From NCBI GenBank assembly GCA_964035545.1, contig OZ037767.1, positions 14,245,801-14,309,800 on the forward strand: a stretch of 64,000 nt of DNA. The letters run 5' to 3'. Below the pieces are notes generated by a model. That model did not search any database. It was given only the letters and a program-made list of their open reading frames with translations, and had not been told where the DNA came from. The position numbers and the translations under genes are program-made. Shown piece by piece: positions 5,897-63,039 of this stretch (positions are counted from its first letter, which is position 1; the number at the start of each line of letters is the position of its first letter). The stretch comes from Bugula neritina. Its lineage: Eukaryota > Animalia > Bryozoa.

Positions 5897-7872
5897 TTAT
5901 TCCCTGTATATTTCATCCAGTGTTTGTCGTGTTGCCTCATCTCTCTCCTCCATATCTGGTGTTCGCCCATTGTAGTCAGTAACACCCAAATACCTTGCCA
6001 GGTCTCTGTAGTCATCCTCTGTGAAAGCTTCCACGGTGCAGAATATTGGAAATTCTGTCAAACTCTGTAAATCTTTTTTATTTTCATGGTAAGGCTTAAC
6101 TGCCTTAATAATCAACTCGAAGCTGTAGTCTTCAGCAAACTTTTTCAAAGCTCTAACACAATTTTTTTCTTGAGCACCACACGGTGCAAAGGTAAGATAT
6201 ATGTTTAAGTTCACCAGGCTGACACCTTTTTTATATCTGTCCTCATAATAAGCCGCTTCATAAGCCTCCACAAATTTCTGCTCTGCATGTGACTCCTCAT
6301 CACTTTTAAACAACCTACTTTGATCTTCGTCATCAGAGTTGTAAACAAATAGATATCTTGGATATGGCGGAGTAATCTCCCCTTTATAGATTTTCCAAGC
6401 ACTCCCTACAAGATACGTTAAGAATATAATGAACAACGAATTAACAATAAATATATTATTTACTACCTATAGCAGGAAATTTTTTTTTGAGATCATAGTA
6501 ACTTTAATATCTACATTGGATAGTATTTTATTTAGTTATAGCTACTCACTATACTGTACTTTTCTCAGCTTTCCTTCTGTTTTTTTATCTCCCTTTACTA
6601 TAGTAGCTTTTGGAATTAATGGAAAGCGCAAGCATCTTGCGAGGTTGAGGTAGTCTTGCTTTCTGAAAGATCTGACAGTGCAGTATCCAGATGCCATCAA
6701 ATCACACAATTCTTCTTCATTCACCAATTCATGTCGCTCTTCTTCCATTTCACTGCAAGCCCCAACTACTATATTCAACTGAAAACTGTATTCTTCTGCA
6801 AAAGCTTTCAGCAGACCAGCACAATTTATTGGATGGGTAAGATACACGTCCAACTTTACTTGTTTGCCCCCTGCTTTATATCTTTCCTTATTATCCTCTT
6901 TAAAATTCTCCATAAATTTCTGCTCTGCATGTGAATTCCCACCACTTGTAAAAAGCCTACCTCCACCCTCAGCACCACGACGGTGTACAAATAAGTATGT
7001 TCGAAATGACGGAATATAGTTATCTGTAAAGACCTTCCAAGCACTCTCTACAAGAAATATCGATCCAAACTTGTGTAAAATTAATTTAGATCAATATAAC
7101 ATTTGCTATGGTAGGTTGGCAATTATTTTAAACTAGTCACTTTAATATCTGCGTTGCATATTTATACAGCCATACTCACCATACAGTATTTTTTCGAGAT
7201 GGAGTCGTGTCTCCTCATCTCTATCCTTCATATCCTGTGTGTACTCCCAATCTTCTTCAATACCCAAATACTGTGTTAGGTCTATGTAGTCCTGCTCTGT
7301 GAAAGCTTCCACAGTGCAGTATCGAGATGTCATCAAGTAACACAATTCTTCTATATTTTGATAGTAAGGTGCAGCTGCTTTAATATTCAACTCAAAGTTG
7401 TAGTCTTTAGCAAATGCTCTCAACTTCGTAGCACAACTCTTTCCTCGAGCACCACACGGAGCATAGGTAAGATACATATCCAACTTTACTCGTTCACTTA
7501 ATGCATTCTGATATCTATTGGCATACTCGTTTCCATAAGCATTCATGAAGTTCTCCTCTGCATGTAACCCCGTAGCATTTTGAAATAACCTGTTTTGATT
7601 CTCGGCATCAGGGCGGTGTACAAGTAAGAAGGTCCTAGCCCGATAATAGTTGTTATAGCCCATGTTTTTATAATCAGACCTGACATTATCTAAAAATTAT
7701 TTAGACAAGTGTAAAATGAAATAATTAATATTCTTAAGAAATTCTTAGCAAAGTTGAAAATTAGTCACTTCAATATCTACATAATAATATTTGTATGTAG
7801 TCATATATATATATACTCACCAAGCACTCTACTATCTGTTAATGGTAAAGGAATTTCTGGTTGATTCTGCAT
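5897..7872 (-). CDS. Three-domain AID/APOBEC-like cytidine deaminase, copy A (522 aa); exons 7872-7821, 7689-7180, 7047-6550, 6405-5897
   Basis: Leader MQNQPEIPLPLTDSRVL, then D1 (RTFLLVH...HAEE...LTYAPCGARGKSC...LNIKAAAPYY...CTVEAFTEQDY), D2 (HAEQ...THPINC) and D3 (HAEQ...TFAPCGAQEKNC). All donors are GTGAGT. Exon lengths 52+510+498+509=1569 nt, in frame. Motif order parallels AID/APOBEC (TYLCY, HxE, PCxxC, LRIFxARLY, IMTFKDY). Confidence 0.88.
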
Positions 7873-7874
7873 AT

Positions 7875-8230
7875 TCTTCTAATCTGTTGAAGTTTATTGC
7901 AACCAACTATTCTTGTGTCCAGTTGTTATATAACACAACATACGCTGTTGTTGAGAATCACATGTCATGTTTTTCAGGTTTATTAACCAATCAATTTGTC
8001 TAAAAAGTTAGCAGCCATTGTAATGTTGTTATTCACTATTGGACAAGTAAACCTAAACTATTATAGGAGTAAGGTATAGGGTAATTGTTTAATCATAATA
8101 TTTATTGTGTGAAGTTGTCTGTGTACTCTCATCTGATTGGTCAGATTATTGAGTATATATAGCCTGAGTACCTACTTTATGGAATGATAATTGACAAAGT
8201 ACAAACTAAACTATACCCAAGAACTAAGTA
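7875..8230 (-). promoter_or_regulatory. Conserved upstream block of the deaminase genes (putative promoter) with CCAAT motifs
   Basis: Aligns by eye with 31015-31390 and 63042-63410, even though the copy B coding sequence is strongly diverged. aaccaatca, cactattgg and ctgattggtca are kept in all three copies. Confidence 0.5.
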
Positions 8231-60049: not shown

Positions 60050-60638
60050 TTATATATACATATATATATATATATATATATATATATATATATATATATA
60101 TGTATATATATATATATATATATATATATATATATATATATATATACATATATATATATATATATATACATATATATATATATATATATATATATATATA
60201 CACATATATATATATATATATATATATATATATATATATATATATACACATATATATATATATATATATATATATATATATATATATATATATATATATA
60301 TATATATATATATATATATATATATATATATATATATATATGTGTATATATATATATATATATATATATATATATATATATACATATATATATATATATA
60401 TATGTATATATATATATATATATGTATATATATATGTATATATATATATATATATATATATATATATATATATATATATATATACACATATATATATATA
60501 TATATATATATATATATATATATATATATATATATGTATATATATATATATATATATATATATATATATATATATATATATATATATATATATATATATA
60601 TATATATATATATATATATATATATATATATATATATA
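60050..60638. repeat. ~590-bp (TA)n microsatellite
   Basis: Seen directly; paralogous to the short tract at 5298-5416. Confidence 0.97.
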
Positions 60639-61075
60639 AGAGCCGAATATCACTTTATTTCTCTTTATTCTATTATATATACCATAAAAAATTATTTATA
60701 CTTGTGTGTTACAGTCTTGCAACAAAATCATACAAAGTGCTACTATGTGTTGATAAATTACATATAAATACTAATTCATGCACACACTTTACAATAAATC
60801 AGTTATACAATTTACACCTTGTTGTTTAATAGTTTGCTGAAGTTTCCAAACCTGCTTGTGTATATTGCATAAATAAATCTATTTTTGTCTTTTTTTCACA
60901 AATAAAAAAGCTGATCACATATGTAAAGATACAAAATCTCAATTTCAATACCATAGAAAAAAACAACATTCAAAAAGTAGTAAGTTATAAAATATTCTAC
61001 AAAACTTTATGTTAAATTAAACTTGGAGTTGTTTTATAGTCACTCATAAATTCCTGTTTTTGCATCCTTTGTTGC

Positions 61076-63039
61076 CTATTCTTCTGCACCATTATTTATT
61101 CCCTGTATTTCATCCAGTTTGCGTTGTGTTGCCTCATCTCTCTCCTTCATATCATCTGTTCGCTTTTCACTGTAGTCAGTAACATTCAAGAACTTTGCTA
61201 GGCTGAAGTAGTCACTCTCTGTGAAAGCTTTCAGAGTGCAGTCTTGAGATGTCATCAATTGACATAAATCTTCTTCATTGTTCTGGTAAGGCCTAACTGC
61301 TTTAATTCTCAATTTAAATCTGTAGTCTTCAGCAAACTTTCTCAATGCTCTAGCACAATTCTTTTCTTGAGCACCACACGGCGCAAAGGTAAGATATATG
61401 TCCAACATTACTGGCTTGACATCTGCTTCGTATCTGTCCTCATAATAAGCCTCTCGATAAGCCTCCATGAATTTCTGCTCTGCATGTGACTCCTCATCAC
61501 TTTTGAACAACCTTATAGTTGTTTTCTTGGCAACATAGCTGCGAACAAATAGATATCTTGGACATGGCGGAGTAATCTCCTCTGTATAGACCTTCCAAGC
61601 ACTCTCTACAAGATACATCAATAATCTATGGCAAAACGAAATAATAAATATAATAATTATTTACTATGGCAGATTAAAAATTTTGAGATCACATGGTAAC
61701 TTTAATATCTTCATTGGATGGTATTTTATTTACTCACTATCCTGTATTTTTCTCAGCTGTTTTTCTGTTTTCATGTCTCTCAATGCTAGTGTAGCTTGTG
61801 GAATTATTGGAAAACGCAAGTACCCTGCGAGATTGAGGTAGTCTTCCTCTGTGAGAAATCTGACAGTGCAGTACGCAGATGTCATCAACTCACACAACTC
61901 TTCTTCATTTGCAGGGTCAGGTTCAACTGCATTAATGACATTCAACTGAAAACTGTATTCTTCTGCAAAAGCTTTCAACTGGCCAGCATCATTCATTGAA
62001 TGAGTAAGATACACATCCAACTTTACTTGTTTGTCTCCTCCTCCATGTCTTTTCTTATTATCCTTTTTAAATTCCTTTACAAATTTCTGCTCTGCATGCA
62101 GCTCATCACTTGTAAAAAGCCGGTCTCTACTCTCATCACCATGGTAGTGCACAAATAAATATGTTCGAGATGACGGAATGTAGGTATCTGTAAAAACCTT
62201 CCAAGCACTTTCTACAAGAAATATCGATCCAAACTTGTGTAAAATTAATTTAGATCAATATAACATTTGCTATGGTAGGTTGGCAATTATTTTAAATTAG
62301 TCACTTTAATATCTGCGTTGCATATTTATACAGCCATACTCACCATACAGTATTTTTTCGAGATGGAGTCGTGTCTCCTCATCTCTATCCTTCATATCCT
62401 GTGTGTACTCCCAATCTTCTTCAATACCCAAATACTGTGTTAGGTCTATGTAGTCCTGCTCTGTGAAAGCTTCCACAGTGCAGTATCGAGATGTCATCAA
62501 GTAACACAATTCTTCTATATTTTGATAGTAAGGTGCAGCTACTTTAATATTCAACTCAAAGTTGTAGTCTTTAGCAAATGCTCTCAACTTTGTAGCACAA
62601 TTCTTTCCTCGAGCACCACACGGAGCATAGGTAAGATACATGTCCAACTTTACTCGTTCACTTAATTCGTTCTGATATCTATTGGCATACTCGTTTCTAT
62701 AAGCATTCATGAAGTTCTCCTCTGCATGTAACCCCATAGCATTTTGAAAAAATCTATTGTGATTCTCGACACTAGGGTGGCGGTGTACAAGTAAGAAGGT
62801 CCTAGACTGATAATAGTTGTTATAGCCCATGTTTTTATAGTCAGACCTGACATTATCTAAAAATTATTTAGACAAGTGTAAAATAAAATAATTAATATTC
62901 TTAAGAAATTCTTAGCAAAGTTAAAAAATAGTCACTTCAATATCTACATAATAATATTTGTATGTAATCATATATATATATACTCACTAATCACTCTACT
63001 ATCTGTCAATGGTAAAGGAATTCTTGGTTGATTCTGCAT
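61076..63039 (-). CDS. Three-domain AID/APOBEC-like deaminase, copy C (522 aa); exons 63039-62988, 62856-62344, 62211-61738, 61605-61076
   Basis: D1 HAEE...PCGARGKNC; D2 HAEQ...THSMND (both Cys lost); D3 HAEQ...PCGAQEKNC. Donors are GTGAGT. Exon lengths 52+513+474+530=1569 nt. Confidence 0.88.

Follow-up and report, generated by a model that had tools for sequence, protein, structure and literature searches.

A 64-kb stretch of the Bugula neritina genome (contig OZ037767.1, 14,245,801–14,309,800; hereafter the window, whose numbering is used for positions) carries three genes predicted to encode chains of AID/APOBEC-like deaminase (AAD) domains. Genes A (5897–7872), B (28275–31010) and C (61076–63039) all lie on the minus strand, at the coordinates given by an initial annotation made from the letters alone. 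Each begins with a short leader exon (46–52 nt) followed by domain exons of 453–530 nt, one domain per exon; the last exon of gene B, at 359 nt, is the length exception. The ten introns of A–C are all in phase 1 with the form GTGAGT...AG, and all seven internal domain exons have a length that is a multiple of three. Translated exon by exon in splice phase, genes A and C each have an open frame of 522 codons and gene B one of 617.

By predicted activity, the domain order in A and C is active–inactive–active. The leader exon of gene A (7821–7872) starts with ATG and encodes 17 codons of polar character without resemblance to a signal peptide. A1 (7180–7689) has a full zinc site, HAE and PC-x6-C, with a loop-7 Tyr and a loop-3 Asn. 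A2 (6550–7047) keeps HAE; its PCxxC loop is deleted, the loop-7 aromatic residue is lost, and the domain is predicted to be non-catalytic. The terminal A3 exon (5897–6405) again has a full site and its own stop. Gene C consists of a 17-codon leader (62988–63039), C1 (62344–62856; full site, 93% identical to A1), C2 (61738–62211; HAE kept, both Cys and the loop-7 aromatic lost) and C3 (61076–61605; full site, own stop). Gene B runs active–inactive–inactive–stub: a 15-codon leader (30965–31010), B1 (30351–30851; full site with HAE, PC-x9-C and a loop-7 Tyr-Trp), B2 (29733–30227; zinc His changed to Thr, PC-x6-C kept, loop-7 aromatic lost), B3 (29151–29603; neither the His ligand nor PCxxC) and B4 (28275–28633), a truncated terminal unit of 118 residues that has no zinc ligands and a frameshift near its 3' end. 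A fourth, single-domain gene, D, lies ∼2.1–2.8 kb beyond the window end (L012:5913-6594, minus strand) and comprises a leader and one full-site exon (D1).

Genes A–C contain ten deaminase-like units, and HxE followed by PC-x6/9-C is found in exactly five of them (A1, A3, B1, C1 and C3), as initially annotated. The same source had spoken of ten domains in 3- and 4-domain genes. Ten is correct for units, but B4 is not a whole domain; A and C do have three domains each, and gene B has three whole domains (one with a full site) and a decaying stub. In a single-frame scan, five open reading frames (ORFs) carried HxE followed by PC-xn-C, compared with 0.01 on average over 100 resampled windows, and a six-frame scan of the window restricted the complete motif set to the three gene regions. 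When the entire genome was searched with proteins and profiles, 11 domains of this subfamily were located, all within the cluster; as regards distant relatives, this count is a lower bound. Pfam family searches of the same genome proved too insensitive for counting distant AADs: they returned a tRNA-deaminase-like ORF and missed even this cluster.

By motif, fold and pocket residues, the domains are AID/APOBEC-like deaminases. Searches and fold predictions took the single exons of the spliced models as units. HxE + PC-xn-C is present in A1, A3, B1, C1, C3 and D1, and absent or partial in A2, B2, B3, B4 and C2. The loop-7 aromatic, a residue linked with cytosine selectivity (PMC5889660), is found in six of six full-site domains as a Tyr aligned with the loop-7 Tyr of APOBEC3H, and is lost in five of five others. 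Loop 3 of the full-site domains starts with Asn or Ser, in keeping with the Asn or small residue that the same source gives for this position. In Pfam, full-site domains scored above the cut-off for NAD1, SNAD4 or both, and a subset also above that for APOBEC_N. Sequence matches of the domain profile in PDB were APOBEC3H or 3F in 11 of 11 cases, with His-Glu, Pro-Cys, the second Cys and the loop-7 Tyr in register. An AlphaFold2 model of A1 (predicted local distance difference test, pLDDT, 85) retrieved only AID/APOBEC structures among the best 50 Foldseek matches and superimposed on AID with a VIA Z score of 20.0 (root-mean-square deviation 2.0 over 158 residues). Its Z scores were 20.0–12.6 with AID/APOBEC structures and at most 7.8 with other deaminase families, so that a better match to non-APOBEC deaminases, named in the initial annotation as grounds for dropping the assignment, was sought and AID/APOBEC came out ahead. 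Pfam, PDB matches, Foldseek and VIA all agree with the AID/APOBEC-like assignment. The site-less A2 (pLDDT 82) was predicted to have the same fold, with a Z score of 16.4 to AID and 7.5 to the next family. The models show the five-strand core, the helix 4 preceding strand 5 and the C-terminal helices that characterize the AAD fold. Among ESM Atlas features, all deaminase leads scored below 0.9.

The domains lacking PCxxC have features of their own. In A2, C2, B3, B4 and related loci, a His directly follows the strand-3 Tyr-x-Thr in every case. A2 keeps two His and the second Cys, which could be an alternative metal site. Two Joint Genome Institute (JGI) contigs (P0021 and P0024) encode A2-type site-less domains in which loop 7 has grown into long Glu/Lys/Leu-rich repeats of up to ∼115 extra residues, which suggests a coiled-coil insert. 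A single origin of the PCxxC-less domains was considered and not retained: they form one clade at 93/88, but three changes are needed when the motif columns are dropped.

In a tree of 55 rows, the Bugula domains formed one starred clade adjoining metagenome sequences and apart from the vertebrate (including APOBEC1 and APOBEC3), Lingula and oyster domains. The expansion is thus independent of mammalian APOBEC3, as had been proposed. The named close homologs were B. neritina proteins. Two-domain proteins of Lingula, oyster, turtle and anteater fell outside the Bugula clade, with their two domains pairing together or with close kin; the multi-domain state therefore arose independently in Bugula.

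Placement within the family is less direct. NAD1 (PF18778) and SNAD4 (PF18750) were the top-scoring Pfam profiles for the full-site domains. The first belongs to vertebrates, nested in their core AAD clade, and the second to sponges, where it is secreted (PMC5889660); no signal peptide is seen in the Bugula proteins. Pfam scores were not accepted as grounds for membership in either, since they reflect generic cross-matching in which many AID/APOBEC profiles match about equally; the tree contained no NAD1 sequence. By inspection, the 15–17 residues of the leader exons are mostly polar and have no hydrophobic core, which speaks against SNAD4 or any other secreted AAD. The lophotrochozoan–echinoderm metal-insert clade is defined by a Cys/His loop-7 insert and a loop-1 His; the Bugula domains have a short loop 7 in which Cys and His do not cluster. 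Nor did loop 1 contain the conserved Cys/His of the long metal-binding insert carried by the Cnidaria–algae–APOBEC4 clade, with which the Bugula domains share an extended spacing of the Cys zinc ligands. The Inv-AAD profile (PF18785) had no match among the window domains, a weak precomputed match in one Bugula paralog and clear matches in the sister group. APOBEC3 (eutherian AID-derived Z1, Z2 and Z3 domains, one or two per protein) was excluded by the separate clade and an identity of ∼20%; the Bugula cluster resembles the A3 locus in its working by convergence, not by membership. The genes are probably classical, non-secreted AADs that expanded in the Bugula lineage.

Several observations bear on whether the domains of a chain are joined in one transcript. 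Paralogous introns retain GT[AG]AGT...AG in 11 of 11 cases, though in their interior just 16% of the columns without gaps show no variation. Indels between paralogs are in frame in 32/32 cases in exons and in 3/16 in introns (the pairs share history and are not independent), and 14/14 are in frame in pairs that include site-less domains. A2, C2, B2 and B3 are still open, where neutral drift to the same divergence would leave only 0.5–5.5% of sequences without a stop, and the ratio of nonsynonymous to synonymous substitution rates (dN/dS) between site-less paralogs is 0.49–0.59. Each gene has a single copy of the leader exon with its immediate upstream flank, and this copy precedes the first domain. 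Nine of the ten introns of A–C measure 113–144 nt and are therefore too short to hold separate promoters. The same active–inactive–active gene is found in L018 and L019 at 92–94% DNA identity and a further one in L023, all three with a three-exon chain and the same donors; two-unit genes occur in L017, L020 and L024. Assignment of the JGI contigs to the Bugula complex is by inference from 92–94% DNA identity over 4.2 kb including flanks. Splice-site conservation, in-frame indels, one leader per gene and recurrence of the gene in other samples make a strong indirect case, and joined multi-domain mRNAs are highly likely. Chains longer than two domains, as initially annotated, are accordingly backed at the level of splice sites, frame and conservation; that they splice into proteins agrees with the open frames and phase-1 introns and is still a model, no RNA run containing the sequence.

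Other observations weigh against joining. The only run containing gene B is DNA-like, with contigs that cross the introns, and introns are likewise present in the Logan contig of P0019. The protein libraries searched yielded no multi-domain Bugula protein. A search for longer homologs, with the separate exons aligned under Lingula AIDL1, gave just Lingula proteins and one single-exon Bugula model; P0051 and P0082, which had multi-stretch profile matches, were unrelated repeat proteins. Retention of an intron would lead to an in-frame stop within 2–25 codons, A[AT]TAAA is present in six of seven internal introns, and the related gene L021 is without its first donor. Because of the early intron stops and the polyadenylation-like hexamers, shorter isoforms may coexist with the full chain. 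A stronger version of this idea is that the chain mainly yields alternative isoforms, by intronic polyadenylation or exon skipping, mostly with one or two domains, and that the three-domain form is minor or absent. The intron stops and hexamers would suit it, the symmetric exons could be skipped in frame, and the artiodactyl A3Z2-Z3 loci provide a precedent (PMC2612020). Such hexamers are, however, frequent in AT-rich introns, and the downstream and site-less exons are constrained in frame and splice sites and have no leader of their own. Moreover, full sites are present in terminal domains, and skipping alone leaves retention of the middle exon unexplained. We regard this alternative as unlikely and joined chains as the better account.

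The chains appear to have grown by units. The introns are homologous to each other (57–99% identity), which makes an intron together with its exon the unit of repetition. A short leader exon spliced to a chain of symmetric phase-1 whole-domain exons would give genes of one, two, three and four or five units, and homologous, frame-neutral units would allow unequal crossing-over to add, remove or fuse domains with the frame intact. The ortholog of gene B in assembly GCA_010799875.2 (L030) has five units. Over the 5' portion of the exon, its unit 4 is 95–97% like unit 5, and over the 3' portion it is 100% like unit 3; a crossover chimera of this kind is what unequal crossing-over within an exon should produce. 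Counting against this example, the L030 gene contains single-base homopolymer frameshifts and assembly accuracy is uncertain there, so assembly error may instead account for the five-unit structure. Paralogous domains are 25–66% identical, with A1/C1 as the exception. Genes A and C are 99–100% identical over 7435–7136, where A and its ortholog L018 are 89–91% identical; downstream of this tract, A and C are ∼80% identical, where A and L018 mostly reach 97–99%. This pattern indicates putative gene conversion between A and C in the near-identical A1/C1 tract. The wider region is a patchwork of segmental duplications. In the DNA run, a second haplotype of lower depth covers the flank and, at 88% likeness, does not extend over gene B, which hints at a divergent allele.

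At the end of gene B, the chain is decaying. A deletion shifts the frame of B4 after ∼108 residues, and the former 3' part runs on in another frame with stops. Logan contigs of the single DNA run match B4 without any difference, and the frameshift is therefore not an assembly slip. It is common to two other Bugula samples (L022 and L030), one of which has an extra early stop. The intron before B4 (517 nt, 28634–29150) holds a ∼380-nt insertion that is absent from the L030 ortholog, has many partial matches in the DNA run and is probably a small repeat element. Between B4 and L022d2, dN/dS is 1.0. These data raise the question whether the whole array is a neutral by-product of unstable segmental duplication, with one domain per gene that matters and the extra domains as decaying passengers. 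The duplication patchwork, the lack of a full site in half the domains, the truncated B4 with its dN/dS and the broken copies in other samples would all be expected. The openness of A2, C2, B2 and B3 at such divergences would not, nor would indels that are in frame only, the retained fold, or an A2/C2 type maintained across paralogs and samples. The explanation fits B4; for the array as a whole, we find it very improbable, and constrained multi-domain genes are preferred.

The full-site domains most probably convert C to U in DNA or RNA that is single-stranded. Zinc would be bound by the His and two Cys, the Glu would serve as proton shuttle, and the loop-7 aromatic would restrict the pocket to a pyrimidine; the site-less domains would add binding, spacing or decoy function. 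Catalytic activity of the full-site domains is very probable. By analogy with known systems, the proteins more probably than otherwise serve innate defence, with foreign or mobile nucleic acid as the target. Fast divergence, recombination and shifts in the number of genes and domains are in keeping with the defence class of PMC5889660. Two results count against a defence role. Pairwise dN/dS was high (0.40–1.00) but in no case significantly above 1, and positive selection was not supported. In addition, 38 copies of a young long interspersed nuclear element (LINE) had no strand-biased excess of G>A (C-to-T on the cDNA strand; p = 0.69): private non-CpG changes were 3.7 (G>A) and 4.3 (C>T) per 1000, and none of the copies was hypermutated. 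This test covered one family and surviving germline insertions, with per-column counts. Both results would be in line with a different role for the same proteins, namely editing or housekeeping that targets self RNA or DNA, or management of symbionts, and APOBEC1, AID and APOBEC2 are precedents for self-targets (PMC5889660). Yet AID, APOBEC2 and APOBEC4 evolve slowly and are typically single-copy according to the same text, in contrast to the fast-evolving, recombining Bugula domains, whose gene and domain number varies between samples. A self-directed role is distinctly unlikely, and defence is favored.

The closest named system outside Bugula is AIDL1 of Lingula anatina (AWK77801.1), the best profile match (E 1.7e-10) and, like the Bugula proteins, a lophotrochozoan protein with tandem deaminase domains. 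LaAIDL1 is an active two-domain mutator in Escherichia coli and is enriched in gut tissue (PMC5956068). It is 22–28% identical to the Bugula domains. Both its domains have HxE + PCxxC, with a Cys-rich loop-7 insert that Bugula lacks, and they are each other's partners in the tree, which makes its duplication independent of that in Bugula. Tandem clusters of invertebrate AADs with inactive copies and copy-number variation between individuals have already been described (PMC5889660). These lineage-specific expansions are, as in Bugula, clustered, with mosaic paralogs and coding mostly from one exon; Bugula differs in uniting active and site-less domains in one gene. The part of that text that was read and searched describes no chain of at least three domains and makes no mention of Bugula. 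The mammalian APOBEC3 locus shares with Bugula the tandem modular domain types, unequal crossing-over and pairs of catalytic and non-catalytic domains, and its proteins have one or two Z domains (PMC2612020). APOBEC3 structures have the fold of Bugula A1 (TM-score 0.64–0.81) at ∼20% identity and in a separate clade. An A3 domain is spread over several exons, and non-catalytic A3 domains retain the zinc ligands. In Bugula, by contrast, each domain occupies one exon and the ligands are lost in non-catalytic domains.

Searches of the literature, with incomplete coverage, and of protein libraries yielded no natural AID/APOBEC protein with three or more domains, and the literature searches, with the same coverage, no study of bryozoan AID/APOBEC. 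The novelty proposed in the initial annotation is reduced accordingly: clusters, inactive copies and an active two-domain enzyme were already published, and what stands are the chains of more than two domains and the independent expansion. The cluster extends the architecture of a system already described, and support for it in the DNA is good. A bolder reading, which to us is evenly balanced, is that these are the first natural AID/APOBEC proteins with at least three domains, an exon-cassette system in which crossing-over would build chains of active and zinc-less domains of variable number and order. Individuals would then differ in multi-specific mutator or restriction factors, and the zinc-less domains, with a conserved His replacing the PCxxC loop, would be a distinct nucleic-acid-binding module. 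If true, an active–inactive–active three-domain protein conserved across Bugula samples would mean that the limit of one or two domains seen in described AID/APOBEC proteins is not structural, and the contribution of additional domains, be it processivity, specificity or decoy function, could be studied in it. The locus also documents chain growth via symmetric single-exon domains and a putative crossover chimera. With it, Bryozoa join the phyla in which the family is represented, and six compact, divergent full-site domains become available as candidate cytidine deaminases.

Part of the surroundings was duplicated along with the genes. An Asparaginase_2 (Taspase1-like) exon occurs in three plus-strand copies (1076–1324, 23413–23718 and 52343–52621), with no other copies found in the genome. 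It lies inside a ∼10-kb block (to 5660; 18019–27960; 47085–56060) that was duplicated together with the deaminase genes. Copies of the deaminase upstream flank without leader or deaminase gene are present at 40553–41184 and twice past the window end (L013 and L015); they are possibly remnants of deleted genes. In GCA_010799875.2, the two-unit gene at L017:9700-10923 has a distal upstream flank, past a LINE insertion, that matches chromosome 7 of the genome analyzed here; at that match, chromosome 7 had no deaminase gene of this type. The L017 gene is either a dispersed copy or a mis-join. A local repeat family without long ORF and with a period of ∼160–190 nt (9456–10279, 32526–33161, 38771–39422 and 41462–43651) interleaves with the duplicated blocks. 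A near-perfect inverted repeat of ∼880 nt (14216–15097; 98.6%) surrounds an AT microsatellite. Some 7–9 kb ahead of the window start lie minus-strand exons of a DEDDh/RNase_T 3'–5' exonuclease (L014:1097-2483; weak Pfam match, E 9e-4), which we take to be REXO4/ISG20-like. On the far side of the cluster lies a calmodulin-like EF-hand exon (L015:4707-4967, minus strand).

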